Assembly: GCA_002269645.1 (NCBI GenBank)
Contig: NIVC01000268.1
Span: forward strand, 671,090 to 735,089
DNA length: 64,000 bases
From: Macrostomum lignano
Lineage: Eukaryota
Reading direction: 5' to 3'
The notes under the pieces were generated by a model that worked only from the letters and a program-made list of their open reading frames with translations, did no database searches and had not been told where the DNA came from. The translations under genes and the position numbers were made by a program. Below, piece by piece: positions 55,810 to 63,546 of the stretch (positions within the stretch are counted from its first letter, which is position 1; each line of letters opens with the position of its first letter).

Positions 55810-58800
55810 TCAGCTCACATCCATGGCCTCCTCCTCCTGCAGAGTTGACGGCTGCGCCTGCGGCGTCTGCTTCTTGGCCCGGCGCCGCTTTGCTAGAATT
55901 TTATTTTCGCTATCCTGCAGAGTCTTCAACACCACGTGCTGATCGTGATCGACTCGCATGGTTGCCAAGGCGACCGACATTTCCTCCTGGGCATCCACCC
56001 ACTGATCGGCGTCCTCTTTTAAGATGCGGGAAGTTGTTAGCGGAGTCTGCGGCACTGTGTTATACTTCTGCAACAGGCGGGAGGGAGGTGCAGCCAGTGC
56101 GGTTGATGGGAAACTCATTGAAGAGATATCGGGAGAGCGGAGGACAAAGCAGTCTTAGAGTCGGTCTCTGTGTCTTACAGTTTGTACAGGCGTATATCGA
56201 TGTGTCTTTCTCGGTACGATTGTCTGTACGCATCTTATGGTCTGTCTGTCTGTTTGTCTTAGTGTCTACGCACGCGAAGGCGTATTCAGCATGCCAGTGA
56301 AGTATGAGACAGACTAGGCCCATGGGCTAAGGTCTGCGATGCTTCACGCCTGCCCCTATCTTCAGCAGGTCAAGGCTGGTGGGAGGTCTGCACCCTCTAT
56401 TTGCCTCTGGCAGCCGCAGACCCCCCCCCCCCACGCTGTCTCGCAAGTCGACCCAGGGTACTCGTCCCCGCGTGTGTTCAAGGCAGTCCCTAGGGCTGCT
56501 GGACAGACTGGGCTCCGGCGCTGGCGACCCTATCCAGTGGCTTCGGCCGAATTTGGGTATGCGGGTCTGGCTCGCCAACCTGCAGGCCGTGGTACTGCTC
56601 AACGTACTCTCTAATGCCTAAGGTGTTGACCGTGCCGATGGGCTGGAAGGCCGGGGAGTAGTCCGGTCGCAAGCGGTCCCCCTCCTGGTGTCGGGCCAGC
56701 CTTGAGGGTGCTATTGGCCTACTGCCCGGTCAGGTGGAGCGGCCGGGTGGGTACCGCGCCCCTTTGAGGGTAGCCCACCAACCTTTTATCATGGCCTTCG
56801 AGCCGACTATGGATAAACAAGCTATTTCTAGGGACGGGGACCCTTCTAAACCCCAACCTCAGTCCGAAGGACCGGCCGGCCCTGCTGGCAGATCCCAACC
56901 GACTGATTCAACTGTGGCAAAGGAAGGACCGGCTGGCTCTGCTGGCAGATCCGACCAGAGCTACCAAACTCAAAATACCCTAAGACCTGCCAGCTCCGCT
57001 GGTGGATCTAAGGGAACCGCGAGCTCTGAGCCTAAAGGACCGGCCAAATCTGGCAGATCCGATGAAGCTCAGCGGGCTCGGCTTGAGCGCAAACGCGCTA
57101 AACAACGCGCCAAAAGGCAGGCCAAGAAGGGAGCTGCGGGGGCCAAAGCGGCGGCGTCCACCATGGATGCTGAAGCGACTGGAGTCCCAAGGCAACCAGG
57201 CGGGCCGGCCGGTGGAAGCTCCAGTAGTTCAGCGGCGGCGCTCCCTGGAGCTGCTGCCGCGGCTGCTGAGGCCGAAACCACGGCGCAACAAATGGCCACT
57301 GCCAACAAGGAGGTTCCTTCGGGAGCTACCTTTGCGGCGAAGGCCAAGGCCAAAATCCCGGGAGTGATCATCCAAGGTCGCGACCAGGACTGGACCACTG
57401 ATCAGCTTCAAAAAGTGTGGAGTGCTGTTGACTCCTATCTGATTGAGCTGACTGTCGAGGAGGGAATCTCCATCGGCGTTGAGCGGATGGTGCTGCGAAG
57501 CACATTCGTTCTTATTGCTCCTAGCAGCGAGGAGGACGCTCGGCGGCTGCTCCAGCGGCTACCGACGGTCTCCTTGGATGCTGACCTTGGCGGAGCTCTT
57601 TTTCTTCGCGAGGGCCAGCGTCCAAAGACGATACCCTATGTGGTTTTCGTCCCTGCTAAGAGCACCGCAGCTGGACCAGACGTTATTCGCCGGGTCCTAC
57701 TGCGTCTGAACCCGACCTCCCTGCTAGTGGACTGGTGTATCACCGCAAAGTCCGCAGGGGGGAGACGGGCAACTCAATTGTCCTCGGCCTTTCCAGCACT
57801 TGGGCGAGTCGGTACCCTAATGGATCCTCTTTCCAGCTGGGTGCCCTCAAGCTCAAGTTGCGCCGAGGAAAGTCTGCCAAAGGGAAGGCTACTGCCAACC
57901 CCGGCATCTCCGGCAAGAGCGGGGCGCAGTCTAAGGCCCAAGGAAAGGCGCAAGCCGATCCCAAAGCCAAAGCTGCATCTTACCCCTCTGCTAGCAGCAG
58001 TTCGGCGACCGCGGTAACGGCTCCGGCCGAGCCCCGGGAACCAAACCTGCCAGTCGGAGAAGGAGTTGAGGACGAGGCCGGGTCTTCGGAATCCGAGCTC
58101 TCCTCGGCCACCTTGGTGGGGTCTGAAGGTAAAGATGCAGGTGAGGAAGCTTCCTCCATCCTGTCATCGGAGCCTGAGGACTCTGCTGGGGGGGCCGGTG
58201 GGGGTGAGGAGGCCATGGACGTCGACCAACTCCCATCTCCCAGTCAAGCCCCAGCGGCCTGGGACGAGGACGATCTGTTGTCCAAGTCTCCTTGATGGCC
58301 CTGGGCTCTAGCCAGATATTGCATTTAATACAGTATGACTAAGCTCCACGCTGCCAAAGGAGCGACATTCTGTCTGCAAATAAATTTACAGCATTGCGTA
58401 TCTGCGTCAGTAAATCTGATGAAGATTGCTGAGCTGTACAGGCCAGGCCTCATCCTGATCCAGGAACCCTGGATGCGCAACGGTAAGTTGCCCAACATTC
58501 CCTCTGGCTACTCTGATTTTTATGTGTGTGGCCCGGGGAACAGCCGCCCTAGAGCGGCTATCCTCGCTGCTAGCCATCTCCAGGCTTGGCTGAGGACTGA
58601 TCTCTCTGATGGAGACCTTTGCGTCATCCAATCTAATCATTTCTCTCCGCGTACGTGTCTTGTTGCCTCGGTTTATATCCCAGGCGACAGAGACCCTGCT
58701 CCCGAGAGTTTACTGCGCCTTGCGCAGTACTGCGAGTCCCAGAACGCTGAGCTGTGCTTAGGGGGCGACCTCAACGCGCACCACAAGCACTGGGGCAGCA

Positions 58801-63546: not shown

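Follow-up and report, generated by a model that had tools for sequence, protein, structure and literature searches.

The cutting of the second target strand and the end of LINE integration are still poorly understood, and the length of the target-site duplication (TSD) is a direct record of the spacing between the two breaks. In ordinary LINE families, full-length germline copies rarely carry long TSDs. The R9 element of bdelloid rotifers is an R2-type LINE with an RLE endonuclease, which uses one specific 28S rDNA site and has the same TSD in every copy; its 126-bp TSD was reportedly described by Gladyshev and Arkhipova in 2009. This TSD is also mentioned as an earlier record in a passage of a study on Chlamydomonas, where target duplications of variable length (median, 900 bp) accompany over half of the new insertions of Dualen-4b_cRei (PMC9977147).

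For L1, TSDs longer than 20 bp are a recognised minority class, where lengths occasionally reach several hundred bp; they are the rare extreme of a length distribution with its peak at about 15 bp (PMC4245944, PMC2912911, PMC1291365). “Many” TSDs above 20 bp are reported for one HeLa data set (PMC4245944), and “extremely long TSDs” are described with truncated inserts (PMC2912911), while a count quoted in one passage of PMC4245944 gives a TSD of 10 to 20 bp for 64 of 66 full-length L1s. The TSDs of the I-group LINE Nimb-2_DR are 10 to 15 bp long with a peak at 12 (PMC4245944), and those of Hebe are 7 to 12 bp long (PMC2861651). A preliminary description of the locus treated here had called R9 the standard exception to such short duplications, which is too narrow a view given Dualen-4b_cRei (PMC9977147) and the L1 TSDs of up to several hundred bp.

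Here, we describe a full-length LINE flanked by a 132-bp direct repeat in a stretch of 64,000 nucleotides from Macrostomum lignano, referred to as the window. The repeat is very probably a real TSD, of about ten times the usual LINE length, and we favor, with a probability of roughly 0.62, one rare, widely staggered event over the normal spacing of the LINE family as its origin.

A 132-bp direct repeat in an intron of a MAPKAPK2-like gene

The features of the insertion site are as follows.

55383 to 55653, no strand: (AGAC)n microsatellite, inverted relative to the array at 62277 to 62486
55810 to 56067, minus strand: last coding exon of the MAPKAPK2-like host gene (...ATMRVD...), matching the C-terminal region
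56068 to 62536, minus strand: host intron with the insertion, now 6,469 nt
56136 to 56267, no strand: left (5'-side) copy of the probable TSD, decayed and (GTCT)n-like, with T at 56254
56270 to 62172, plus strand: full-length LINE (non-LTR, with APE, RT, and RNase H, I-group type), antisense to the host gene
62173 to 62304, no strand: right (3'-side) copy of the probable TSD, with C at 62291
62277 to 62486, no strand: (GTCT)n microsatellite, where the array turns pure

The two repeat copies match at 131 of 132 nt, the T at 56254 and the C at 62291 being the sole mismatch. Identity is lost sharply at all four sides of the pair, breaking off on the left with GGGAG against GTCAA and on the right with ACGCAC against GTCTGT. 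The one mismatch, together with a single frameshift in the element, fits a young insertion. The self-BLAST search of the 64-kb window, with satellites excluded, yields five dispersed direct repeats in all, of which three are LINE-to-LINE matches, one is a 1.4-kb segmental duplicate, and one is the 132-nt pair; the pair is thus the only one of its kind, which argues against a high background of short duplications. Partial matches elsewhere are limited to a (GTCT)n-like stretch, the final ~28 nt of the repeat. The 132 bp are 68% identical to the (GTCT)n array and are a decayed part of it.

The exon at 55810 to 56067 matches the C-terminal region of human MAPKAPK2 (PDB ID 6tca) with an E value of 1.5e-16, and the preceding exon on the minus strand ends with ...HPWIA at 62537. 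The intron between them has its donor GT at 62536 to 62535 and its acceptor AG at 56069 to 56068 on the minus strand. Removing the element and one repeat copy shortens it from 6,469 to 432 nt, leaving a GT-AG intron between MAPKAPK2-like exons. The preliminary description had already given this 432-nt intron and the pair with one mismatch, and it had placed the insertion at the edge of a (TCTG)n tract, which agrees with a top-strand break at the 5' junction that lies ~27 nt within the start of the array at 62277 to 62486. The left copy continues into the host intron and its acceptor site, and the right copy continues into the (GTCT)n array.

The (AGAC)n and (GTCT)n tracts form inverted arms of 207 nt with 88% complementarity on either side of the last MAPKAPK2 exon; in an allele lacking the insertion, these arms would be separated by about 660 nt. 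Pairing of the arms could enclose the last exon in a long hairpin, in the DNA or, if the (AGAC)n tract lies within the transcript, in the pre-mRNA. No rRNA match was found in the region from 54000 to 64000, and the Rfam search of the same region returned nothing; the insertion in a MAPKAPK2-like intron therefore differs from the specific rDNA site of R9.

A pair of this kind might also arise if a heterozygous insertion had been assembled incorrectly or if a separate duplication had occurred that is unrelated to the insertion. Such an artefact or later rearrangement would suit a window so extremely rich in repeats, the microsatellite flank, and the ORF1 frameshift, which falls in a short G run, a typical place for long-read indel errors. 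However, the edges of the repeat match the independently defined ends of the element to the base, which neither mis-joining nor an unrelated duplication would be expected to produce. In addition, the one-base difference between the copies shows that no single sequence was used twice, and the window holds no other spurious short duplications. We consider an artefact or later rearrangement improbable.

Domain structure of the inserted element

The sequence between the repeat copies (56268 to 62172, 5,905 bp) is a plus-strand LINE with a GC content of 53 to 60%, compared with 26 to 45% in most of the non-repeat sequence of the window. Its parts are listed below.

56268 to 56269, plus strand: extra AC at the 5' junction, absent from the related 5' ends (alignment A1)
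56270 to 56790, plus strand: 5' UTR, the first ~245 nt being 83% identical to the LINE 5'-end fragments at 13427 to 13654 and 19681 to 19915
56791 to 58295, plus strand: ORF1, about 500 residues from the first ATG, with a 1-nt frameshift at ~57714 to 57716
58335 to 62075, plus strand: ORF2, 1,246 residues, open throughout, with predicted APE, RT, and RNase H in this order
58377 to 59009, plus strand: predicted APE endonuclease at the N-terminus of ORF2 (residues 15 to 225)
59835 to 60590, plus strand: predicted RT (residues 501 to 752; RVT_1, E = 9.7e-28), with YADD in the translation
61158 to 61544, plus strand: predicted RNase H (residues 942 to 1070; RNase_H, E = 1.3e-10), downstream of the RT
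61824 to 61876, plus strand: C-terminal Cys/His motif of ORF2, after the RNase H
62149 to 62172, plus strand: 3' terminus, composed of the motif CTGCAGCTAAGTCAA and one extra GTAAGTCAA unit (alignment A2)

The Pfam search assigns the N-terminus of ORF2 to Exo_endo_phos (E = 5.5e-14, residues 15 to 222, covering the whole profile length) and Exo_endo_phos_2 (E = 8.4e-21). Only APE, RT, and RNase H are matched in ORF2, the C-terminal region having just the Cys/His motif, and no RLE domain was found. ORF1 has no Pfam match. The element has no long terminal or inverted repeats of its own, the sole terminal repeat being the target duplication. Judged by its APE, RT, and RNase H domains, its tail, and the lack of LTRs, the element is an APE-type LINE of the I group. 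The Pfam domains and the ends of related copies agree with the preliminary description, which had read the repeat as the TSD of a full-length LINE with APE and RNase H in the MAPKAPK2 intron.

The same description had called the LINE intact, which holds for ORF2 and fails for ORF1. The ORF1 frame at 56734 to 58017 carries ...LNP, and the frame at 57735 to 58295 carries the continuation ...GNSIVLGLS, which matches the ORF1 of the related contig L001, where the counterpart of the post-shift frame reads LPANGIVAHE...FTAILGLS. At 57706 to 57720, the frame changes past ...LNP (CTGAACCCG|ACC), and L001 reads LNPG-LPANG there, so that 1 nt is lost in a short G run. The change may be either a real frameshift or a long-read or other sequencing indel.

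Related copies and the ends of the element

We set the ends of the element with four independent relatives, which were aligned at their 5' ends (alignment A1) and 3' ends (alignment A2).

About 7564 to 10042: copy D, a degenerate copy of a related but different family, with 45 to 65% amino acid identity in ORF2
13427 to 13654 and 19681 to 19915: copy C, a 5' fragment found twice in the segmental duplicate, 83% identical to nt 3 to 249 of the element
Ending at 22081: copy B, a 3' fragment
Logan contig L001 (ERR14788467): ORF2 57% identical, the contig beginning exactly at the equivalent of 56270

The 5' homology begins at the motif GC..GC.A.GG, which corresponds to 56270 in the element, 19681 in copy C, 7564 in copy D, and the first position of L001. 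The left repeat copy stops 2 nt short of this point, and the right copy begins directly after the element tail ...CTGCAGCTAAGTCAAGTAAGTCAA. An exact abutment on both sides had been claimed previously; it stands at the 3' end, whereas at the 5' end the dinucleotide AC at 56268 to 56269 lies between the repeat and the start of homology. Compared with the related 5' ends, the AC probably represents extra nucleotides added during 5' joining.

At the 3' end, the four copies share CTGCAGCT[A/G]AGTCAA followed by zero to two extra units, none in L001, one GTAAGTCAA in the element described here, and more elsewhere. The motif CTGCAGCTAAGTCAA is kept in the three other copies, one of which has a G at the ninth base. 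The “AAGTC tail” of the preliminary description thus corresponds to a conserved terminal motif, to which a variable short repeat (here the one extra GTAAGTCAA unit) appears to be added, and not to a plain microsatellite. A distant relative with 35% identity in ORF2 (L003) ends in a (TTGGAAC)n tail at about 5670 to 5695; short repeat tails other than poly(A) are thus common in the LINE group that includes it.

Direct repeats at both ends resemble an LTR-like structure, and the 132 bp might accordingly belong to the element, as terminal direct repeats or as a flank carried along from a parent locus. The gene content is, however, that of a LINE and not of an LTR element, the four related copies share the start and end positions of the element but none of its flanking sequence, and the two repeat copies run on into the intron with its acceptor on one side and the (GTCT)n array on the other. 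The 132-bp sequence is absent beside the ends of copies B, C, and D and L001, which identifies it as target DNA; it had been conceded earlier that the repeat might turn out to be part of the element consensus. We regard an origin of the repeat within the element as highly implausible.

Protein searches with the full ORF2 and with its last 247 residues give 96 to 97% identity only to partial Macrostomum lignano gene models (P0006, P0008, P0030, and P0131). The next-closest ORF2 relatives with available DNA are L001 with 57% identity and others with about 35%, and the contig collection holds no record of the exact ORF2. A metagenome scan with a 24-nt pattern of the 5' end resulted in 0 matches. 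The scan with a 17-nt motif of the 3' end resulted in 96 matches, where none of the 80 loci fetched (L004 to L083) has a LINE ORF2, indicating that those matches are due to chance.

TSD length as an event or a family trait

Copy D is the only relative in the window with a scored TSD, and it is of a different family from the element with the 132-bp duplication. Its TSD is 12 bp long, with ACTCATCTATCG before the 5' end and ACTTATTTATCG after the tail; 10 of the 12 positions match, both differences are C/T, and the repeat lies exactly where L001 and the alignments A1 and A2 predict it. We estimate the chance of such a 12-bp match at about 4e-3, allowing for 49 offset combinations. L001 begins at the 5' end of the element, so that no TSD can be read there. 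For the distant relatives L002 and L003 (35% identity), which lie on longer contigs, a comparison of the 5' flank with the 3' flank gives no direct repeat of more than 12 nt. The 12 bp of copy D, the lack of long repeats around L002 and L003, and the typical I-group length of about 12 bp (PMC4245944) point to a one-off event at the MAPKAPK2-like locus.

A long TSD could alternatively, as the preliminary description had suggested, be a property of the family, the second strand being routinely broken about 130 bp from the first nick, so that every copy would have a nucleosome-sized TSD of more than 100 bp; speculatively, a second ORF2 molecule or a nucleosome-scale spacing might be the means. 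The sole copy that can be scored is full-length, young, and directly joined with clean junctions, and thus looks orderly and not like a repair accident. Systematic long TSDs also occur in other LINEs, namely, the 126 bp of R9, as cited in part of PMC9977147, and the median of 900 bp of Dualen-4b (PMC9977147). By a rough Bayesian estimate, one long TSD raises the hypothesis noticeably, such TSDs being rare in germline full-length copies. Against this stand the sample of one copy, the 12 bp of the related copy D in the same genome, the two distant relatives without long flanking repeats, and the I-group norm of about 12 bp (PMC4245944); furthermore, the known systematic cases have an RLE endonuclease, which the element with the 132-bp TSD lacks. 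A family property seems unlikely, though more probable than an artefact.

If the spacing were a family trait, the element would to our knowledge be the first APE-only, non-site-specific LINE with a systematic long TSD. It would then provide a natural handle on second-strand cutting, the least understood step of LINE integration, and a reproducible spacing of ~130 bp with APE only would be a useful natural experiment.

The single, widely staggered event that we favor has one point against it as well: the very long TSDs of L1 were reported from HeLa cells, chiefly beside inserts truncated at the 5' end (PMC2912911); the insert with the 132-bp TSD is, in contrast, full-length. With one copy of the exact family to judge from, “exceptional” is at best a probable description of the event.

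Proposed integration mechanism

We propose that target-primed reverse transcription placed a full-length I-group LINE in the last intron of the Macrostomum MAPKAPK2-like gene, in antisense orientation. In terms of the empty site, the bottom strand would have been nicked between 56135 and 56136 (bottom strand 5'-...CCGCT|CTCCC), and the 3'-OH ending in T would have primed cDNA synthesis on the RNA 3' end ...AAGUCAA. A terminal T is likewise deduced for the primers of L001, copy B, and copy D, as would be expected if synthesis started on the A residues at the end of ...AAGUCAA. The top strand would have been broken 132 nt downstream (...GTGTCT|GTCTGT), where the decayed (GTCT)n becomes a purer array. 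Filling in the two 132-nt 3' overhangs would then have duplicated the target, and the complete cDNA would have been attached by direct joining, the AC dinucleotide being gained in the process.

Over the long stretch between the two nicks, the duplex would remain paired. A published model holds that a paired duplex between the nicks favors complete reverse transcription and direct joining (PMC4245944), and the insert, which is full-length and has two extra nucleotides and no microhomology at the junction, agrees with this model. A reasonable guess is that the top strand may have been nicked opportunistically at this distant point, within repeat DNA prone to form structures; beyond the exon, the tract has its 207-nt inverted partner. 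The repeat, its exact junctions, the ends and domains of the element, and the host intron are directly observed, whereas the order and the cause of the two breaks are inferred from the junctions, and the exceptional nature of the event is likewise our interpretation.

Comparison with known LINE systems

As in sporadic long-TSD events, a direct repeat of more than 20 bp of target DNA adjoins both ends of the element. The likeness to L1 consists of the rare TSD above 20 bp. The long-TSD cases of L1, however, stem mainly from cultured HeLa cells and are mostly 5'-truncated, whereas the Macrostomum insert is full-length and was found in a genome assembly, and is presumably of germline origin. The Macrostomum element also belongs to a different LINE group and has an RNase H domain and a non-poly(A) tail.

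R9 is similar in TSD length (126 against 132 bp), and both duplications lie beside full-length elements. The Macrostomum element differs from R9 in its APE endonuclease, its position in an intron of a protein gene, and the single copy observed. Dualen-4b_cRei resembles the present case in being a LINE whose insertions show very long target duplications, but Dualen carries RLE in addition to APE, whereas the Macrostomum case is one event of 132 bp with an APE and no RLE.

The structural likeness is to Nimb-2_DR and the I-group LINEs, with two ORFs, the order APE-RT-RNase H, and the direct joining of full-length inserts. The 12-bp TSD of copy D coincides with the 12-bp peak of Nimb-2_DR (PMC4245944); the TSD of the full-length Macrostomum copy is about ten times longer.

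On this comparison, a single 132-bp TSD beside an APE-type LINE is unusual but has precedent, and it is another example of a kind of event that is already known. The case indicates that widely staggered integration can give a clean full-length insertion in an invertebrate genome assembly, presumably in the germline, and modestly extends the L1 findings from cultured cells. It also carries a caution for annotation, as TSD searches limited to 20 to 30 bp miss such duplications.

Other LINE fragments and repeats in the window

Copy D (7564 to 10042) is internally deleted and lies at the end of a 22-nt satellite (6002 to 7554). The two copies of the 1.4-kb segmental duplicate (12228 to 13660 and 18481 to 19913) lie 6,253 bp from each other and are 91% identical; they take in a portion of a 23-nt satellite, end within the LINE 5'-UTR fragment, and diverge after 13660 and 19913. 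The region that follows that fragment (19916 to 21200) has numerous stop codons and, near 20090, a gag-like ATG region, and it resembles a further retroelement. The region 13655 to 14086 has internal inverted repeats (ctttctcgaaa / tttcgagaaag) and a AGTCAAGCCAAGTCAAG motif resembling the LINE tail, and may be a small non-autonomous element.

The regions 21232 to 22081 and 22947 to 24271 are LINE ORF2 fragments of related families, with 40 to 61% amino acid identity; the former ends with ...CTGCAGCTAAGTCAAGTCAGTCAAAA, and no long flanking repeat was seen for either. We rejected an 11-bp duplication (AAGGGMTGCTG) as a TSD candidate for the 3' fragment ending at 22081, as its left copy lies inside ORF2-homologous sequence (SRD..DH). 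Reading the 5' fragment at 19681 and the 3' fragment at 21232 to 22081 as one element was likewise rejected, the flanks having no repeat in common.

The tandem-repeat density of the window is unusual. More than 15 different minisatellite arrays with periods of 20 to 32 nt are present (143 to 3386, 6002 to 7554, 11796 to 15939, 24420 to 36447, and 63591 to 64000), and a 107-nt repeat at 35898 to 36447 occurs in five copies that are 99% identical.
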